The translations under genes and the position numbers were made by a program. A stretch of 63,735 nt of DNA, counting the filler, from Platydemus manokwari (Eukaryota), in assembly GCA_037951405.1 (NCBI GenBank). It is 6 parts of 6 records of this genome, joined end to end, with 100 filler letters (N's around TTAATTAATTAA, not from the genome) between each part and the next. Parts side by side here need not be neighbours in the genome. Positions count along the whole stretch, not along the records: positions 32,704 to 46,555 come from JBBMOY011595853.1; 5 more parts are not named here. One strand, written 5' to 3'. Under the pieces are notes generated by a model. The model did not search any database. It saw nothing but the letters and a program-made list of their open reading frames with translations, and had not been told where the DNA came from. This document shows positions 32,704 to 46,555 of this stretch, piece by piece. The first letter of the stretch is position 1. Each line of letters opens with the position of its first letter.

Positions 32704-35335
32704 GATGGAAGCAGAATTCCATTTTGTTCAGCTTTGAGATTTATATACTGTTGGTGTGAGGAGTTGACGTCGATTAAATTATCAATCAATATATAAATAA
32801 TAATAATATATACAGCGTTGACGATAATACACAAGTACCATTTTATGTTTAAAGGGTTTTTATGGGTCTTTACAATAATAATAATTATTATTTTCCATAA
32901 CTCCAATTTCCATGCATTCCCCTTTCTGGATAGTTAATGCATAGACTTTTCATGTTTGCTTGATATTTTTCTATTAAAATTCCAGCGTCTATGTTTGGAA
33001 AATATTGATAAACTAAAGAATTAATACGTATAGTCATCCACAACACTACTAAAATTGATACATGGTTTTGTTAAAAACCCCAATTTACCTACCTCAGCTG
33101 CAATCAACATTAGGTGCTGATGTAATTATTCAATCACAAACAGCTAGAATTACTGACATTTTTTATAATACATTACAGTGTGAAGTAACTTATAATTTAA
33201 ATAATGGCTTAAGTTTCCTGAAGATAACATTTATTATTTATTAAAACCAATTAAAGTATTTTCATCTTTTTTCTGACAATCGATTCATGAATTGCCAAAG
33301 CGAATAGCTTCAGCCAAATTGGTTAAAATCGAAATCAATGAAAAGATTCAAATCATAATATAATATTTATATCTAGTATAGTATTAGAATATTTTAATTT
33401 ATTTTTTAAATATTTCAATTTGATATTTTAAGAAAAATGCTTAACTTTAGCTTTCTATTCTTTTGGGTTTTGTCAGTTTTGTCTAACTTATTGTGAATTT
33501 TTGAAACTGAATTTTGTAAAATATGTGTATATTTGATTAAACAAGTTTTTGATATTATACTTTGATATTTGAAGTTATTAAAGCATGGGATATGTCACAA
33601 CCGAGTCCGAAAAATCACAATCTAATCTCTGAGATAATTCTTCGAAGAGAGTAGAAACTGACTTTGATGACACACTTATTATCATCCAAACACGGATCCA
33701 TGAATTAAAAGCTGCATATGAGATCTTCATAATATTTTTATAAGCTTTCAAAAAGAAACATTATAAAACCCTATAGTAAATAAAAACAATGAAGAGATCA
33801 TTAGGATTATTGAGATTAAGATCTATTACTTTGGTATCAAATGAAAAGCTCTAGGTCAAATTTTCAAGTATTTTGGTGGATAACTGTGATGTATTCTATT
33901 GCTAGTCATTTGTTCTTAATACTGTCGACAGATTCAAAAACCATAGACCACTTCTGTGATTTTTGATCAATGTAAATCGAAGATCGTTTAAAATCACAAA
34001 TTCGAACCGAAAAATCATGATAAGAAACAAATAAATGAAAAATAATAATTAGAATGATAAATTATATTTACATTATATTACAAAAAAATTATTGACAATT
34101 TCTACATAATAATGGTTTAAATCATCGCTACTAACGAATTAGTGAATAGTATTAATGAAATCATAAAGTTAAAATACGAATATTATCCTAACGGAATGAT
34201 TGATAAACCTTGTAATTATCTTTGTAATTGATACTCAAAATAAATTAAACGAAATGAAAATTTAATCTTGTAGCAAAATGTGACTTCTTTCATAAATCGT
34301 GATATTATGAAGGATAATTTTTAACTGAGATCATTTATCATCATTTCATTACTTTGGATCGATTCTGGTTGGTTTTAACAGATAGCACAATACACAGAAG
34401 GACGAAAAGATAGAATCATCATACGAATAATTTAAGAGATTTTAAATACAAATCACCAAGTAGAAATCCAACTCTAACTAAAAAATGAAGAAAACTAAAC
34501 ACATTGAAAAAATTAAATAGAAAGTTATACACAAATAACAGTAATAAATTATTCTAATTCAATCCAAATATTAAAAAATGGAGATACATAAAAGAAATCA
34601 ACGACTTACTTAAACCAAAACTATCAGGATTAACAACAATTATATTTTCATATAAACGAACTGCTTGAGAGTTGATAAAATTTGGAATAAATTATTCCAC
34701 ATCGTGACAAATATATTCAGTATTGGAAATTTCTGTACATATTATTAGTAAAATAGCCATTTGGTCAAACCTTACGATTTAACAATGAGTTTTGTTCAGC
34801 ACTCTGTCTTTGGATGATAAAATATCAACTCCAATGGCCTTACTTACAATATGCCATAACAAGCTAATTCCAATATTAAGTGTCGTCATATATTGTTTAA
34901 ATTAATAAATTTAAACAAAATCTAAAGTATAGCGTGTTCAAAGTATTTTTACAAAAAAGTCGGAAATAGATTTGATCACTAATATATCAACAAAAAATTC
35001 ATATAATTAAATACAATTATTTACAGTATTAATTAATTATAAATATTTTCAATTTTAAATTTTTCCGATGGTGATTTCATTCAATTAAATTTTCATTCAT
35101 GACTTAAAATTTAAAGTGATAATAAAGGCATGGCAAAGTTAGATCATTTCAAGATAAAAAAATTATTTTCACCTGCTTCATACTTTTCTAAAAATCTCCC
35201 AACGAAGCCAAATGAAAATGAATTATAAAATGTACGAATTTAATTTCAAGCATTTTTAATAATTGATTAATTAAATAAATTTACTTGTTTAAAATTAAAA
35301 TTTGCAAATTTTACGCTGCTGACAGCTTATGTGGA

Positions 35336-37080
35336 ATGATGCATTTGAAGTTCGTTTTTCTATTTTTAGATTTTGAATCATGTATTTCCTACAATAAATT
35401 TATAATTTTATCGATTTATTTATTGATTATCTTTTTTGTCATAAAGAACTCATAATTTTATGTAAAACTTTAAATCAATAAATTAATTATTTTTCGATGA
35501 TTTTCCAGCAAGATTCATTGTAAATATCATCCAAATGCTAATCTTATAGAAGATTTTACTGCTGGTGATTTAATATGTCCAGTCTGTGGATTAGTTGTTG
35601 GTGACAGGTAAATATTGATTTTCATCTTAATAAAATATTTCTTGTAATATATTTAGAGTAATTGACTATAGTAGTGAATGGCGTTCATTTGCCAATGATG
35701 GGAATGGGGAAGACAGTTCAAGAGTTGGTGTCGTTGAAGACAGTATCAATTCAGAAGCTACCACGTCGATTACTATCAAATCATCATTTGATGCCCGTCA
35801 TCTCGATGAAAATGGTAATCAAAAGTTTAAAAATCGTGTCGCAGTATCTTCCACAGAACGTATGTTAGCTCAGTGTCGTAATCATATAAATACCATCGGT
35901 AGCAGGTTGAATGCAGATTCCAATACAAAAGTAATCCCAATACAAAAATAACAAATTTATTGATATAATATAATACAGAATCTAGCTATGATGATTGTGA
36001 AGAAATTAACAGGAATAAAAGAATTTAGCAGGAAGAATAAGGAAGACATTGCGTGTGCATGTTTGTTTTATGCTTTCCGTGAACAAAAAGTCGAAAGAAG
36101 TTTCAAAGGTTGCTTATTTTGTTCGAACAAAAAGCTTTCCATAACGGTTTTATATTAGAAGTCGTTTTTTAAATTTAATCAATATTTGGACTTGTATTCA
36201 TGAAGGGGTGTATTTAACTTTATCGTTCAAACAACGACCAAATCATTAATGAAAACTGAGTCCTGGTGATTTATCCAATGAAATTATTATTTGCACATAA
36301 CTGACGCAATGTTTTCAAATTATTTCATGATTGAGTAATCGATGATTAAATATGCTAATTTCGTTAATATGAGTCATCTTTGAATTAATCGATACTGATT
36401 GACGTTTTTTTTCATTGTTTGCAGACATTCAAATATTAAATATGGCGTTATATTTTGCTTATTAAAATGTTTACTTCAGGAATTGTTTAGGTTAGGGTTA
36501 AATTATTTATAATGAATAAATTTGGTACAGTTGTTTAAGGATTTTATTCGAAACATTAAAATCAAAAATTAATCATATTGATGAATATAGGTATTATTTA
36601 TACATTTAGAAATTTGTACCGTCAGTAAGTCTGCTGTGAAAGACATAGGAAAAACATTCAAGAGGATTATGGCTTCATTGGGAGTAGAAACTCAGACCTC
36701 TAATTTAACTGACCAAATGGCTCGATTTTGTGGCAATTTACATTTGAAAAATAAATTCATACCGAAATTGGCCGTGGATATAGTTAACGAGGCAAAGAAA
36801 TTTATTTTCAAGAAACCATCAACCATGATAGCTACTTCGATATATATGGCTAGTTTTCTTATGCAAGAAGAAATAACAAAGAAAAGTAAAGCCAGTTCAA
36901 TTTAATTTGAACTTCTTTGAAAATTGATTTCCATTTACAGGAATTTTCGAAGTTGTCGATGTGACTGAGAACACTATTTCATCAGCTTATAAACTTTTCT
37001 ACAAACACAGGCATACCATAGTTCCTGCTTCTGTGATGCCAAAATTACTGAGATCAATTAAGGATTTGCCAGAATCGTGA
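35336..37080 (+). CDS. GTF2B: Transcription initiation factor IIB family protein (divergent TFIIB), ~310 aa
   Basis: Exons 35336-35349 (tentative start exon, MMHLN), 35509-35607, 35657-35930, 35979-36108, 36610-36885 and 36941-37080 splice in frame (933 nt). Zn ribbon [30 protein letters not shown]; B-reader [14 protein letters not shown]...DSSRVG; cyclin folds [26 protein letters not shown]...IGKTFKRI and [10 protein letters not shown]...IATSIYMAS. Mostly missed by the ORF track because the exons are short. Confidence 0.92.
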
Positions 37081-39522
37081 AATTATTTTTATTTATTTGT
37101 GACTTTATCCGTGTCAAAATTTTTTTTTAATGTCATTTTATGTCTCAAAGGATGTGAACATTGTAAAATAATTTCCCCTCCCGGTTCGAATGTTTTATTC
37201 GTCTAAATTATTGTTAAACTGTCATTTTTCTTCAAGTAAAATGTCTTGTAATATTATCATTGATTTTAGAATATATCAGTTTTTTACAATAATAAAACAA
37301 ATGACTTTAGCGAGAAACTTAGAATTACCAGGTAATCATGATTTGATATTTGGGATTAATTTCAAAGGTTGCCAAACTTTACCAAAAATTTTACTAGCCT
37401 TATATTCCAGTAATGTTTAGATTGTAAATTCAGCTGAAACAACCACTAGAAATCCATTATTCATGTTACTTCAATAATCATGAAAAATAATTGTAGCGTT
37501 GGCCTTGAATCTTAGTGATATGATTGGTGGTTAAGTAGACCGAAAGAATTATTTTATTACAAAACTATGTTCAATATTATAGATTATGGTATATAACACA
37601 ATTTTCACCTAATTGAATTAAAATACCTGTGACAGTGTCGTATAGAATGTTAAAGTGCAAACAATGAAACTTGAAAACTGGAAACAACACAACAGAAAAT
37701 CTTCAAATAAATAAAGAGTAATAAATGCGGTAAAAGGAATAAGAAAAATCAAACTGACGGTATAAAATTTTTAATACCAGTTTTTTATGTGCCACAAATT
37801 AACATTGGCACGAAATTATTGCCATTATGCAACAGCAGAGATTTTTTTTCAGTATCGATTTTTCGTCGTTTGAAAAATTATTTAATTGAAAAACTTGCCT
37901 ATTGGTACACAGGTTGACCAAGAAATTGATTTCCTGCAAATCCAGAACCATTTTTCTTCCCAATTACGTATTTAGAATATTATTGAAGATGATATGTAAA
38001 CAAGTAAACTTTATTTTTCTTAAGGACAAATCTTTTTCGATAAGATCTTTTTATAAAATTTAATATGCATGTAAAATCACCACATCCTCTTTTTGTACTT
38101 TTATCATCAAAAAATATTGGATCTATTAGTGCGACACAAGTGGTATTGTTATTCTCTCTAGATTATTGGAGGCCATTTTGTTGTCTAAATCCTAATTTGA
38201 GTGTTTTAAATAACTTTGCTTAATATATTTTTTATGAATTCGTTTGTTTTATTTGATGTTTATTTTATATAATTTTTCAGGAATTTGATAATCTACATAT
38301 ACTCATTACATAATCTTAAACACAACTTCATCTCTTTGCAGTCAGATTTTAGGTAAATAACAGTTAAGTTGACAAACTGTTGACAAAATATTTGATTAGT
38401 AATTGATTAATTAACAATATTATTTTCGCTGCATAGTCAAAAGAGATACAACCTAAAGAAGGAAAAATCCAGGAGTCCAGAGGAAACAACAAAGACACCA
38501 AAAGGACGAAAGTTTGAAAATATAAATGATGTAGAAATTATTTAAAGTAAATAACATTAAATTTTCAGTGGTACAAAGATATTTTATGCATAATAATAAA
38601 TATCTTTGATTAGTGTTTCTAACAATAATATAATTGTGACTGTTCAAGATGAATTAAATATTCACGAATCAACAAATTGACTATTGTAATCTAAAACTAA
38701 AAAAATGATGATTTCAGTCTCTTAATGAAAAACTCTCCACGAAATATTTATAATGATAAAACTATAATAAATAGAGATGAGAAATATATCGTATCTCATA
38801 TAAAAATATAAGATTCCTAAATTTATTAAGAAGAATAGGACACGTCGTTCCTTTCAAAAGATGAGTCATACACAAAATTGAAATTCAATAGAAATAAATT
38901 ATTAGACAAACATAATTTGACAATTAAAAATATTTTTTGATGTAAATATATGAATGAAACTAATGAATTGGTAAATATTAAAGTTTTTGTCATTTTTTTC
39001 ACAAAACTCTTTAAAGGATAGCGGAGACACTTCAGATTTTCATGACTCGGCAGAGTTGTAAAAACATGGTGCGAACCACCGGTCTTGGACAAGAATCAGT
39101 AAAACAGGCACTGACTAATGATCCCTCAATTCAAGCTCTATCAAACGAGAGTAATAGTGACCCTTAACGAATATTAAGTTAGGGTTAGTAACAATAATAA
39201 TATCGTGATTCTCACACTGATGTATACTGTATCGATTTTTTACTTTATATATGTATCAATTTTATTTTTGATAGTTGATTATTAAGATATAAAAAAGTAA
39301 GAATAAAATATTTCAAAGTGATTATAAATAGTAAATCTGACATAATTATCTTTAAAAAAATTTTAAATCGATAAACAATGAAAAAGAGGATCCGATAATA
39401 AATTGGATTATAAATATTATTAAAAAATTGGTATAACATCATAATAATTTGTGCAATGAATTTGAGAAATATAGGAGTGATGAAATGAATAAATAAATAA
39501 TTACCAAGAGAAAACAAAAATC

Positions 39523-39523
39523 C

Positions 39524-39570
<47 letters not shown>
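39523..39570. repeat. (AAT)n microsatellite
   Basis: About 16 perfect AAT units. Confidence 0.95.
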
Positions 39571-39571
<1 letters not shown>

Positions 39572-41399
39572 GAAAAATCAAATGGATAATTGAAATGAGA
39601 AAAGTAAAAATAGGAGGAAGAGAAAGTAAGAGAGAAAGAAAAAAAAAACCAAGCATAAATTGATATGAGTCATGCACAAACAAAAAGAATAATCAGGCAT
39701 TGTAGAATTTAATAAGACAAATATTTCGGGTCAGTTGAAGAAATTTCATATTAATAAATAACGTTCATTTGACAAATCACACATACCGAAAATAATACAA
39801 AAAATGATGGCAAATAAGTGTGCTCTTAATTAAGACAGAGTGTGTAATGAACCTAGTTTTTATTTTATTTTTCGTCTCGCACAACTTTATTGATTGAAGA
39901 CAATAAGTGTGGCAATAGAGATATAACTTAATTAACAATTTCCATTTATGCAGTTTATCTTTATTTTTAAACTTGCTGATATAAATGATGATGATCAGCG
40001 TCAAAGCGTCTAGGATTCATATTCAATCAATAACCAACACATTTGATATACAAAGTTTTATTGATAAACAACACGAAAACAAATTGGCAATTAAATAATA
40101 AAAAATATTACATTTTATTTTATTACTACAATATATAAAGTACCATTTATTTTCTGTCATTTATTAATTATTCGTGCTTATTTTAAATATTACAAAGAGA
40201 AGTTTAAATACTATCTCTCTTGATTACGATTATGAATAAACTATGTGAATTATTTTCAAATAATTCAATACTATAATCCAATTATCAATCATCTTAGAGT
40301 GAGTTGGTAAAACACTCGGTAGGTCGAAAAATCCATGGAAATAACCCTCCAAGGAATGATACACAACTTCGATTACCGGACATGCCAATAGCCAATGAGA
40401 TTCTCCCTTCATATCAATCCATATTTAGAATTCAATAAACGATTAGTGAATATCAACAACCACCAATAAACTTAAAGTTTCACCAATGGCACAAAAGAAG
40501 TAAAAGAAATTGATATCAGATCGACGTTTGAAAAGTAAATGAATGAAAGGTAAAGTTCTGAGACATGAAGCGAACAAACACGATAACCCTATAAAGGGAA
40601 TTTAATTTCACGAGCATCTGTCTTTTTAGTAAGTAACTTTAACGTCACGAAAGGCAATAAAAATGTCTACTACCTTAACTAGCGACTAGATTTTTATAAA
40701 ATAAAGACTAGGGAATTCCGAGTTACTAAAGCAGCCTAGCACTATTAATATGCAGCATTATTTACATAAATAATTCAATTACTAAAAGAAAACAAACTAT
40801 TTAATTGAGTCATATTATAAGAATAATGGCTCATAAAGCCAAATGACGCAAAATCTATTCTCAAGCCCAGAACACAAACCAGCCATTCATCATTTGGCCG
40901 ATATGGTAGAAGGAGTTTCAACACAAAATTTAGGGCCTTTTAAGACTCTATGAACAAATAACAATTCGTGACACTCTAGCATCAATGTTTTCCTTTGTAC
41001 TTGCATATTTCTTATGTTCATGGCAATATCATAATCGGGAATAATCATATGTCAAGATAAACTCTCGAAAAATCAGCACACCCACCAGTATACCATACTA
41101 GTTGTAGAATACTTATATGTATTTGAATAATATAAAATATAAACTAATAAAAATAAAAAAATTTCAAAAACAAACATATTATTATTAAAAATTATTACTA
41201 AATATTACTAAAAAATAAAATTTTAGAGAAAGTTAAAATTTCAGGTATTATGTTTCAGTAAGAAGACTTCATAACTTTAATTCTGGATATTCAAAAAAAC
41301 ATCCAAAATAATATCTAACTTTACATTTCATTATTTTTGTTTGAGGTTTTAATCAGCCGATATCAAAATCTTTAATTTACTCTCATTTTGGACATATCC

Positions 41400-44100
41400 C
41401 TCATCATGTATGCAAAGAACTCTACTTAGACGATCATTGTTGTATTTCCTGATCAAAAAGCACTTCCTTAATGAATGATCTTCTCGCTAAGGTCAATCAA
41501 ATTTCGGATTTCAATTCAGTTATTGATGATTATCATCTTTAGGGATCGCTTTTATCTGTCTTTGGGGTCAGTTTTCTTCGGTATAGTGTACCTTGAGTCC
41601 CTTTCCACATTTCCTACAAGACATCTTCGATAGTACCCTTTTAAGCCCTGTTTTTTCGTAACGACTTAACAATATTTAAAAACTAATGGCCAGATCTCGT
41701 CTTATTTCATAGATAATTCTCGGATTTAAAATGAAGGATTCTTTAAGTTTATTGCTTTGCAGCCAATTTAAAACAAATTGAAATTTTCTTTTAAAACATG
41801 CTGTGATTCCAGGATAATTGGTAGTTTAAAAGATAATTTTCTGACAATTTTATGTATTGGTACATAAAAGTATTAATTATTCCATTTGGAAAATATCTTG
41901 CCAACTTATTCTATCAGGTATCTTTTATTACTTTTTCATATTGATTCGATCTATATAACTTATTTATTTCAAGCCAATCATTCATCAAATGAATTCGAAG
42001 AAATTCTGTATTTGCTCAATCATTTTTATTCGATGCCATGTAAAGTATTTTGTGAACATCTTTTATCTGTAATCTTTGTTAAATAAAGAACACCTTCTCT
42101 TCCAACTGCAAATGTTGTGCTTAGTCATTTTAAGTGACACGAGTGATAATCAAAATTAAATCTTTTCACATTGGTGTTATTATTACTTGCATTATTTATA
42201 AATTTGTATTATATTATTACTTTGGTCATCCGGTCCAGTCAAATGCTGATTATAAAATTGATAAGTAAATGGTGATTATAAAATAGTTATTATTTGAATA
42301 CTAGTTATTCATCTATTAAAATATTTGAATTGCACAAAATGTTTATTGTCATGGTTACTTTTGAAAAACATTTAATCCGTGAATCTCAACACACCTAACA
42401 ATTAACTCAATGAATTTATTTGATGTGTTCTGGTATTATCTGATTTGATTTATATACTTTATGATGATTCATTTTACATCTTTTGTCTCAGTTTGAGCTG
42501 AAGTACACTATTTATAATGATTTGAATTCCCCCTTTGTTTGATACTGAATACCTAAAACAAGGAAATAAACTTGTAAAAACCTAAAAATAATAATGAATA
42601 AAATTAATAATTTAAAATATTTTAAAAAATATAAAGTGATAAATTCTGGTTAAAAGTAAAAAATCGCATGCAAAAATGCCAAAATTTTGCAGAAAGTTTT
42701 CTAAAAATGGAAAAGTGCACATTAAGATATACTGTGATAAATTTAAATGTAAAAAAGCGACATTTAAGAGTCACCGATATGCAATAAGCTGTTGAGTTAA
42801 AAGATAGGAAAACAAAACAGAAAAGAATAATGAATAGCTTAAATTTTAATTAAGTTCGGAACATAATTTTGAAAGTACATGTAAAAAAATAAATAATGAC
42901 GTTGATTATGTACTGTCAATCATAGGTAAAAACTTGCGTAAACAAGTTATCCGCATTCGTCAGTAAATGAATTCACTGACACATTCGATAGTTTTAGCCA
43001 CGCTATAAGTAATTTGGAACTTATCAATCGAATTTATTTTCTATTATTGCACAGTTAATCTATCGCTATATTTAAAAACCTCCAAACAAAATACTGAAAG
43101 AAGACATAGAAATCCGAAACAAATGAAAATCAATTCACAAGACATTGATCATTACACACAAAGTCAATGCTATATAACAAGTGAACTCTGGAGAAAAACT
43201 CTTAGGCTTTAAGTTTTATTATTTTTTCTTTATTTTGATTACTGAGCACACTCGCGATTTGACTTTTGCATGAGACTTTTTATATCATTGATTCTGATTA
43301 AGCGTTTCATTTTGTATTATTGCGGTGAATACCATTTTATATTTAATATTCTAATAAGAATAAATAAACATATATTTAATGTTAAAATATATCTTATCAC
43401 ATTTATTATAATAATTACTGATATCCATTCACTGTTATTTTATTTATTATATATGTGATTTATTATAAGTTATTATTCCAACAATTATTTTGATCTTGAG
43501 AACCGAGAAATAATATTTAGATTTTTGTAAATGTTTACTACCGTGAATTATTTTAAGAACCTGGAATAATAATAAAGTTGTAAAGAATTCAATAAATTTT
43601 TCACCATAATAACTTTACCAAATAATTATATTTATCGATAATCACATACTGTTATATTATGCTACATATATTTTGTATACATAAATGCTCAGTTCATTGA
43701 ATATTCTATCCCATGACAAACATGAATATATTATAAAACGATATGAAATAAAATACAATATTGTGAGTAAAATGAAATAGTAAATTAATCAGTAAACGTG
43801 GGTTACAAAATTATTGAATTACTTTTATTGACACTGAATTGCCTTTCCCCCGATTTGTTTCGAAATTATTGAGATGCCTTGGCTTATTCTGAACTATCCA
43901 TTGTTGTCGTGGAAATGGAAGCAATCTTGTTGTCATCCCATATATGCAGTTTCCGCTTCTAATATATAGATAAATCCAGAATCTTACATACACGGCATTT
44001 AATTACGAGATATCTTCACACTTAATTTTGTTGATGAATATAGTGCCCTTAAAACTCTCGTAAATTTCATGTACTCCAAAGTATCGCAGATGCAAAATCA
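41400..44100 (-). mobile_element. Possible very decayed non-LTR retrotransposon remnants
   Basis: On the minus strand, GFIYILEAETAYM(+1 nt)DD near 43932-43981 resembles a frameshifted RT YxDD motif. Further downstream, CRKCGK at 41601-41618 resembles the start of a C-terminal CCHC knuckle. The order is right for a LINE, but the frames are full of stops. Confidence 0.25.
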
Positions 44101-45715
44101 CTTTAATATATTTCTGTCAACTAACTATTATTTAACTACAATTCTAAAACAACTGTAATAATTTTAACGAATTAAATTATTTTTATTGATTGTTTTATAT
44201 ATTAAATTTTTGTATATTTAATAAATGTAATGAATATTTAATAAATTCTTGGTTCGTCTAAAAAAATGGTTCATCTTTTATATATATATATATATAACCC
44301 AGCAATACTAATGGAAGTTCCAATTGAAAATTACGAAACACAGATAATACATAAATTTAAGGGATTCTATGAGAAACATTTTATAACAATAAATTATTTT
44401 ATTCTTTGGTTGGATTTTATAAATGCGTATTTAAAGATTCAGTTATTTGTTATAAAATGATAACATAAGATAATTATACTAAATTTCATTATTAATATTC
44501 AAGTCGCTTGAACTCTAATCGATTTAGTCTTATCGACGAGCTATTTAGTAGTATCAATATTCCAAAACCTATGGAAACATGATTACTCTATGTACCGATC
44601 GATCGAAATATAAAATTCTATATCAATTAAAAATCACCGTAACTTATGGATTATGAAAATTATTCATTTTGTATTAGTTAATTGTTTCTTTATTTATTAT
44701 TTTAAATAAATCGATACTTTATTATTGTTTTTGTCATTTTTATTGGAGTAATAAATAAATGGTTTAATATGGAAATTAATGTTTTAATATTAATTACCAT
44801 TTTAAAAAATATTTCAATTTATAATTTGGTTTAAATTAAGAAAGAATATGCTTTGACCTACTTTTGTAATAATGAATTTTCGCGCATTAGATAATTTTAT
44901 AATTTAATTTTATATAAAATTGCGATGTTTTATTTATTTGTATAATTCATTTAATATCTCACTTTTTAGGATGTCCAATAAGGGCAAAACATAGTTTCAA
45001 AATCTACTTCCTACTTTAATTGGAACACTTCCATACGATTATTTGAATTTTTAGATTAAAAATTGTTAATTATAAATCGAGTTAGTTAACTACAGTCATG
45101 TTTAATAATATCATTAGTTATTTTTATAAAATAAATGTAAAAGTTTGAAGTATCTCTCAACTTGCTTCAAATGTTAAACAAATTCGTCCTCGCTAATTTT
45201 AAATAAAATGCAATTTGACCTACTTTTTACATTTTTTCAAATAATCAAATTTTAGGAGAGTTTAAAGCTCTGGTGTTTTTAATATTTTATTTAAAATAAT
45301 TCAAATTCTTCTCAAGTAAAAAATTTAAAATGTATTTACAGAATCTAATTAAATAAACTATATAGATTTTTTGCAATACACTCAGCATGTTTAAAATTTT
45401 ATTTTAGGACCACTTTTATTAACTTTAGTCCATAATTTCAACATTTTGATATTACAAATAATAAATAATTGATTGATTCAATGATGCCACATACAAAATG
45501 TCGGACTAAAAATTATGATTTGATTTTCAATATTGAAACAACTTCAACAAATAACACACATTTTTTTGCCGGTTAAAAAAGTAAAAAAAAAAAATAAAAC
45601 TAATTATTTCATTTCTCAGTTGCTATAAAATGATAAATAAATTTCTTGGAATTTATTAAAGCCAAAACAACATTAAATATCAGTTAACAAAAAGAAATTC
45701 ATTTCTTTTTAAACT

Positions 45716-46346
45716 TTAAATTTTAGATGGCAATAAATTATTCAAATGTAATGAAAACGAATCGAACGTTTCTTGCAGACTATCTGGTGATAAACTAAGT
45801 CGAATTTCTGTTTCTATAATCAGAATATTTATCATTGATTTGTGTTAAATTAAAATACGCAACAATTCAAACCATTGACATCAATCTTCTGTCCACTCGA
45901 ACTAATGGCCAACAAAACAGCAGCAGCAACAATAGAAATTGGACTATGATTAGCAGCAATGTTAAGCATAATTGCTTTGGTAACAATGATATAAGAAATA
46001 TTGATTATATCATCACCGACGTCAAGTTTTTTACACATCTCTCCAATGATCTGTTTGACACTCATATTGTTACTTTTATCAATCAATCGACGCATGATTT
46101 TTTTGAATGTTTTCCCGATGATCTTTTTTGTCACGGTAGATGTTGCACACACATCTGTATGGGACGAAAACAAGGTCAAAAATGAAATTGGACAAATGTA
46201 TTTAATAACTGTCAACCTTTAAATGAAAACGGAATGCTCTCCTTTTTGCATGTAATGAAAATACAGGAATAAATAATCGCTTCTTTATTACAATTGCGAA
46301 TTTCGTCGAATACGCATATTTGTTTAAAGGTTGAAAATGTATTTTT
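45716..46346 (-). CDS. Second TFIIB-like gene, core (cyclin-fold) exons only; 5' part not visible
   Basis: Minus-strand exons 46346-46217, 46154-45873 and 45813-45716 splice in frame with no stops (169 aa): KNTFSTFKQICVFDEIRNCNKEAIIYSCIFITCKKESIPFSFK|DVCATSTVTKKIIGKTFKKIM...ANHSPISIVAAAVLLAISSSG...|ETEIRLSLSPDSLQETFDSFSLHLNNLLPSKI*. It has the same 130-nt exon and the same intron phases as the gene at 35336-37080. Confidence 0.85.
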
Positions 46347-46555
46347 CTTTAATAATAATAACAATAATCATATCGATTAATAATAATAATAAGCTAAGTA
46401 AAATAAATTTCAAATCGAATCGATAATCTAAAAATGTATTAATGATTCATTAATTACAAAAAAGAATTATTAAACCGATCATCCACTGTTGAAAATTACT
46501 GTTCAATAGTCTTTAAATAAATGTTAAATTTTAAAAATTGAAATGACAAAGAGTT

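Follow-up and report, generated by a model that had tools for sequence, protein, structure and literature searches.

TFIIB is among the most conserved parts of the RNA polymerase II (Pol II) machinery in animals and is usually encoded by a single gene, while tissue-specific paralogues of other basal factors are represented in animals by TRF2/TBPL1, TBP2, ALF/TFIIA-like and TAF4b/TAF7L. To our knowledge, the alternative initiation complexes of animals use paralogues of TBP, TFIIA and TAFs, not of TFIIB. The present analysis concerns two TFIIB-family genes (gene 1 and gene 2) of the flatworm Platydemus manokwari (GenBank assembly GCA_037951405.1), for which the concept would be the same, an alternative pre-initiation complex derived from a paralogous general factor, with a different factor involved. 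The window, which is the whole stretch of DNA analysed (63,735 nucleotides, filler included), comprises six parts of six records joined end to end, and both genes are located in the part at positions 32704–46555 (JBBMOY011595853.1), which has a G+C content of about 25%. Gene 1 (+ strand, 35336–37080) and gene 2 (− strand, 46346–45716) are convergent, tail to tail, with 8.6 kilobases (kb) between their stop codons (37078–37080 and 45716–45718, respectively), and in this layout, as in the assignment of both to the TFIIB family, the original prediction agrees with the Pfam matches and the stop positions. The two genes are new members of a known family, and we favour, with moderate confidence, the reading that both are functional and belong to a TFIIB radiation specific to flatworms, where gene 1 is complete and gene 2 is highly specialised and cut by the contig edge.

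The plant TFIIB-related proteins (pBrp/BRP) comprise 14 members in Arabidopsis, some of which are specialised for gametogenesis (PMC7865254, PMC10671200). This family is likewise a lineage-specific TFIIB-like expansion beyond TFIIB, BRF and TAF1B, although it belongs to another kingdom and has an independent origin, and its members have tested functions, whereas the genes of the window are known here from sequence alone. The open literature searched contained plant families, BRF2 and viral TFIIB-like proteins, and no account of TFIIB paralogues in an animal, flatworms included. Among sequenced animals, TFIIB pairs linked on one contig are encoded by the snail Bradybaena similaris (P0322/P0344, with consecutive locus tags), the ladybird Harmonia axyridis (P0289/P0360) and the wasp Aphidius gifuensis (P0313/P0330). 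These pairs are young (89–94% identical, and 66–77% identical to human TFIIB), unlike gene 1 and gene 2 (23%), and as they occur in three unrelated animals, young TFIIB duplicates are not rare. The statement of the original prediction that TFIIB is single-copy in animals thus has exceptions, though these are pairs of about 90% identity. The rotifer Adineta steineri also possesses several TFIIB copies (P0162, P0176, P0181 and P0213), the first three of which are 72–77% identical to one another, while P0177 and P0183 of Seison nebaliae are 87% identical and share only 41% identity with human-type TFIIB, representing another fast-evolving animal TFIIB lineage.

In architecture, gene 1 corresponds to the canonical animal TFIIB (GTF2B), and it is predicted to be a complete six-exon TFIIB gene, the product of which (about 310 amino acids) contains the zinc ribbon, the B-reader, the B-linker and two cyclin repeats. 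Exon 1 is guessed to be a coding micro-exon of 14 nucleotides (35336–35349; ATGATGCATTTGAA; donor GTTCGT, phase 2), and a start at this position would give an N-terminus equal in length to that of the closest relative, P0152 (MKSNQIHCKYHP). Exon 2 (35509–35607; acceptor ttttccag, donor gtaaat) encodes the zinc ribbon of the form C-x2-H ... C-x2-C, which matches Pfam PF08271 (Zn_Ribbon_TF) above the curated cut-off (E = 7.2e-9) and keeps the zinc ligands (CKYH...CPVC); the motif CKYHP is common to all flatworm sequences of the alignment that cover this region. Exon 3 (35657–35930) covers the B-reader and the B-linker and extends into cyclin repeat 1; over its full length it aligns with residues 45–133 of human TFIIB (phmmer, E = 5.6e-12), and it retains the strings SEWRSF and SRVG. 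Exon 4 (35979–36108; 130 nucleotides, starting in phase 0 and ending in phase 1) belongs to cyclin repeat 1 and gives a weak match to PF00382 (E = 0.036), while exon 5 (36610–36885; 276 nucleotides, phase 1 on both sides) completes repeat 1, encodes the larger part of repeat 2 and matches both PF00382 (E = 5.6e-6) and the human TFIIB core (E = 2.5e-7, PDB chains). Exon 6 (36941–37080) carries the stop codon TGA (37078–37080) and aligns with the C-terminus of P0152. The introns are all of the GT–AG type, with lengths of 159 (guessed), 49, 48, 501 and 55 nucleotides. A conserved Arg/Thr pair of TFIIB meets the TBP stirrup (PMC7221094), and these positions are occupied by Arg and Ser in gene 1 and by Lys and Ser in gene 2. 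The product of gene 1 may bind TBP–DNA and recruit Pol II, and it would most likely be TFIIB proper, which bridges TBP-bound promoter DNA to Pol II.

The visible extent of gene 2 is 169 codons in three exons, which cover part of cyclin repeat 1 and repeat 2 and have the same core fold as canonical TFIIB. Exon A (46217–46346, − strand; 130 nucleotides) starts in phase 0 after the acceptor aaag and ends in phase 1, exon B (45873–46154, − strand; 282 nucleotides) completes cyclin repeat 1 and encodes the larger part of repeat 2, and exon C (45716–45813, − strand) ends with the stop codon TAA (45716–45718), about 30 residues after the second cyclin repeat and about 55 nucleotides upstream of an AATAAA. 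The two introns between them (62 and 59 nucleotides) are both of the GT–AG type and are located at ancestral positions. Directly upstream of exon A, inside the presumed intron, there is a (TAA)n-type trinucleotide run (46350–46432).

Exon B matches Pfam PF00382 (E = 2.2e-6) and human TFIIB (E = 4e-9, PDB chains), and exon A matches residues 138–178 of human TFIIB (phmmer, E about 0.006–0.012). Exons 3 and 5 of gene 1 and exons A and B of gene 2 all have human TFIIB as their top PDB sequence match, archaeal TFB is also matched by exon 5 of gene 1 and by exons A and B of gene 2, and phmmer searches of the full set of PDB chains with exons A and B (E ≤ 10) gave no match to Brf1, Brf2, TAF1B or Rrn7. 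The AlphaFold2 model of exon B, built from a 55-row alignment, has four helices and a mean predicted local distance difference test score of 83.5. Its top Foldseek matches are human TFIIB and Pyrococcus TFB, with E-values that are weak for this query of 93 residues; Brf1 is only 31st, after 22 TFIIB/TFB chains, and TAF1B/Rrn7 is not among the 50 best fold matches listed. A feature search of the ESM Atlas yielded only ‘TFIIB repeat’ clusters, archaeal and viral, and gave no lead. Neither gene is BRF-tailed, as both proteins end 30–45 residues past the second cyclin repeat, and gene 1 has no long C-terminal extension, its full-length alignment ending together with the TFIIBs. These matches support the identification of both genes as TFIIB-type rather than BRF. 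The BRF assignment was ruled out by searches, while the trees described below held no BRF or TAF1B sequences; as far as the searches show, the second copy does not group with BRF, an outcome that the original prediction had reckoned with.

The frame of gene 2 is open over all 169 codons. Stop codons occur at a density of 0.079 per codon in the non-genic frames of the piece, at which a run of 169 codons would be free of stops by chance with a probability of about 9e-7, and only one of the 1734 non-genic open stretches reaches 94 codons, a low-complexity stretch at a trinucleotide repeat. All four visible splice sites of gene 2 are intact, and purines make up 0.68 of its first codon positions, as in gene 1. 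The GC content by codon position does not set gene 2 apart from the background and was rejected as a test. Since gene 2 is open at 23–33% identity, which is hard to square with long neutral decay, the maintenance of both frames is supported; for the original prediction, which described open frames in both genes, this holds with the restriction that gene 2 is seen over these 169 codons and not whole. Gene 2 encodes an extremely diverged TFIIB core domain with a frame probably kept open by selection, and is most likely a specialised TFIIB-like factor; both genes are presumed to be expressed and functional.

The gene structure is shared with other flatworm TFIIB genes. In the cestode Anoplocephala perfoliata (CM142491.1:10001–14611; L007), residues 1–128 of TFIIB are encoded in one exon, followed by a phase-0 intron, a 130-nucleotide exon, a phase-1 intron, a 282-nucleotide exon, a phase-1 intron and the last exon, where the phase-0 intron is placed as in both genes of the window. 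Gene 1 has two introns in the zinc-ribbon/B-reader part and the cestode gene has none there; the last intron of the latter is about 3.4 kb long. The same three intron positions and the 130-nucleotide exon are present in a genomic fragment similar to the flatworm protein P0154 (ENA metagenome contig k141_810319, 1–809; L006), in which one intron of 66 nucleotides lacks stops and was translated as coding sequence by the gene caller, giving the protein P0007. The matching introns, the 130-nucleotide exon and the two phase-1 introns on which the original prediction had based a link between the two genes are therefore real features, which are ancestral to flatworm TFIIB genes and indicate no special tie between gene 1 and gene 2. 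As the intron positions match, both genes are considered to derive from DNA-level duplication of a flatworm TFIIB gene, and a retrocopy origin is ruled out.

Gene 1 and gene 2 are 23–26% identical, confirming the great difference outside the shared motifs that had been described, and their identities to human-type TFIIB are 38% and 30%, respectively, as compared with 72% for a mollusc, 63% for a nematode and 56–58% for the cestode and Macrostomum. Among 24 canonical animal TFIIBs, 84 alignment columns (45 of them in the core) show conservation of at least 90%, of which gene 1 retains 61 (31 in the core), a fungal TFIIB 58 (28 in the core) and P0154 72 (40 in the core). The strings NKE.I, SFK and IGKTFK.IM are present in both genes as originally predicted, but not all of this is derived in the pair, as IGK.FKKI is flatworm-wide; what remains in common between gene 1 and gene 2 is limited to NKE.I, SFK and the T of IGKTFK. 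Ancestral states, namely FKQ, SPIS.VAAA and the 282-nucleotide exon, have been retained by gene 2 and were replaced in the gene 1 clade by VKK, KPS..IA and a shorter exon. The split between gene 1 and gene 2 is old.

A profile search of 1.84 billion protein representatives gave 418 matches, and the results rest on the best 150 of these; the spliced proteins were compared by local BLAST with the profile matches and with those of two follow-up word searches. The relatives of gene 1 are P0152 (61% identity over 310 amino acids), P0115 (51%), P0153 (48%), P0093 (46%) and P0154 (45%), among which P0115, P0152 and P0153 are UniParc-only records. Among the best 150 of the 418 matches, the top ones are ordinary TFIIBs and the gene 1 relatives are ranked 93rd and 115th. 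Two database TFIIB entries (P0001 and P0005) contain an exact internal repeat of the cyclin region, which inflates their profile scores and looks like an assembly or gene-model artefact. P0154, P0155 and P0093 are encoded on intronless contigs, of which that of P0154 is clearly mRNA, with a poly(A) run at its end, and those of P0155 and P0093, which come from sequencing runs or metagenome samples, are mRNA-like; on these grounds, this branch is transcribed in nature. The slow-evolving P0154-type flatworm TFIIB (environmental mRNA L001/L002, genomic contig L006) shares with the locus the intron positions, the 130-nucleotide exon and a string including RHLDE.GN, is sister to the gene 1 clade, and is the nearest sequence to gene 2 (33% identity).

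In a 47-row tree, Macrostomum branches off first, followed by Anoplocephala with P0159, then P0154, then P0155, and then the gene 1 clade (gene 1, P0152, P0093, P0115 and P0153), all within a well-supported flatworm TFIIB clade, and gene 1 belongs to a fast-evolving flatworm TFIIB subclade. From the tree and the CKYHP motif, the organism reads as a platyhelminth. In the core-column tree, gene 2 is likewise placed within the flatworm clade, with support values of 97/97 and 96/94, and adjoins the short-branched P0154 (86/78); its end branch measures 3.95 changes per site, and its exact position is uncertain. An exclusive clade of gene 1 and gene 2 is rejected by the approximately unbiased (AU) test (p = 0.009), in agreement with the ancestral FKQ, SPIS.VAAA and 282-nucleotide exon of gene 2, while the test does not reject gene 2 as a branch joined to the entire gene 1 clade (p = 0.37). 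The two genes are thus, as judged from the trees, not each other's closest relatives. Of the old duplication with both copies kept that had been proposed, the age of the split and the open frames (for gene 2, chance about 9e-7) stand, and the simple sister pair does not (AU test p = 0.009).

Several points weigh against two functional members. No in-frame ATG was found in exon A, and no zinc-ribbon/B-reader exon of gene 2 was found by three-frame translation of the 209 nucleotides between exon A and the piece edge (46347–46555, on the − strand side of gene 2), which have stops in every frame, or in the rest of the piece by tblastn with nine TFIIB queries. Gene 2 retains 22 of the 45 core columns, and the RF of the near-invariant RFC motif is gone. 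No protein more than about 36% identical to gene 2 was found among the best 150 of the 418 profile matches, in the word searches or in the metagenome scans, and a sequencing-run search with the stretch matched one DNA run, which is probably its source, and no RNA run. Should the genome contain no canonical copy, gene 1 would simply be the fast-evolving TFIIB of the organism. The best-surviving alternative, in which gene 1 is the one TFIIB at work and gene 2 duplicates the last three exons only, has no function and is dead or in decay, draws on the same points: the ATG, the zinc ribbon, the B-reader and the first cyclin helix of gene 2 are missing from the piece, no relatives and no RNA run were found, and 23 of the 45 highly conserved core columns are lost. 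In addition, P0115, P0152 and P0153 surfaced in the word searches without a canonical-type partner from the same source. However, neutral drift to 23–33% identity should have filled the frame with stops, the four splice sites are intact at ancestral positions with a purine bias equal to that of gene 1, and exon B still scores as a TFIIB repeat and yields a confident model. When placed on the core helices of human TFIIB, exon A would start midway through helix 2 of cyclin repeat 1, and an upstream exon is thus expected rather than excluded. With the gene 1 relatives placed no higher than 93rd and 115th, any gene 2 relatives of about 40% identity might rank below the best 150; a word search with both second-repeat exons, for which proteins of 51–161 amino acids only were eligible, found nothing, and two scans of metagenome contigs of the Joint Genome Institute for gene 2 relatives were blank. 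A dead or dying gene 2 is accordingly regarded as rather unlikely, the 5′ exons of gene 2 being most likely located beyond the contig edge, and gene 2 would presumably have an N-terminal half.

It is less probable still that gene 2 is functional and truly devoid of the polymerase-binding N-terminal half, as a core-only protein with TBP- and DNA-binding activity that acts as a competitor or a modulator of full-length TFIIB. The exons of gene 2 that are seen are core exons alone, the intron ahead of exon A is at least 209 nucleotides long, while its counterpart has 48 nucleotides in gene 1 and 46 in L006, and the Lys and Ser at the TBP-stirrup pair are both conservative changes. However, exon A has no in-frame ATG and starts within a helix, and some upstream coding exon is therefore needed. 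We know of no core-only TFIIB of this kind in animals. That gene 2 belongs to another TFIIB-like branch (BRF1, BRF2 or TAF1B/Rrn7) is scarcely credible. Its very long branch (3.95) and its identity of only 30% to any TFIIB speak for such a branch; against it are the PDB matches of exons A and B, which up to E = 10 are to TFIIB and archaeal TFB only, the 31st rank of Brf1 in Foldseek, a stop about 30 residues after repeat 2 with no BRF-type C-terminal extension, the intron positions and the 130- and 282-nucleotide exons of flatworm TFIIB, and a position inside the flatworm TFIIB clade in a tree without BRF or TAF1B.

Gene 1 and gene 2 may be best described as genes that parted long ago within a TFIIB radiation specific to flatworms and are still linked tail to tail, and a division of labour with a canonical copy may be supposed. 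A wider proposal, put forward tentatively and with some doubt, is that some free-living flatworms possess an old TFIIB radiation, composed of slow canonical P0154-type, fast gene 1-type, P0155-type and ultra-diverged gene 2-type members serving as alternative Pol II initiation factors, two of which, gene 1 and gene 2, lie side by side here. The ‘alternative Pol II initiation system’ of the original prediction, with germline or stem-cell variants acting beside a canonical copy, is possible as a conjecture.

The spacer of 8.6 kb between the two 3′ ends (37081–45715) contains no recognisable gene, RNA family, transposon or further TFIIB exon, as searched with Pfam on ten open stretches, with Rfam on the whole piece and with tblastn. 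The positions 42597–42635 were masked in tblastn and skipped in the codon-position composition, and were counted in the stop-codon tally. Another (TAA)n-type trinucleotide run is located at 39529–39607. The region 40200–41700 has a slightly higher G+C content (0.29–0.32), a negative GC skew and several open stretches of 45–64 codons on the − strand with no Pfam match, and may be the remnant of a mobile element or of no significance.

If several very different TFIIBs are kept in flatworms, they would constitute the first promoter-class- or cell-type-specific initiation in animals that is built on TFIIB. In the case of the wider radiation, flatworms would have an animal set based on TFIIB that is comparable to the plant BRP family and to the multiple TFBs of archaea. 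If gene 1 is the only TFIIB of the organism, the locus would still contain an unusually fast-evolving general transcription factor together with a long-lived, highly diverged duplicate.

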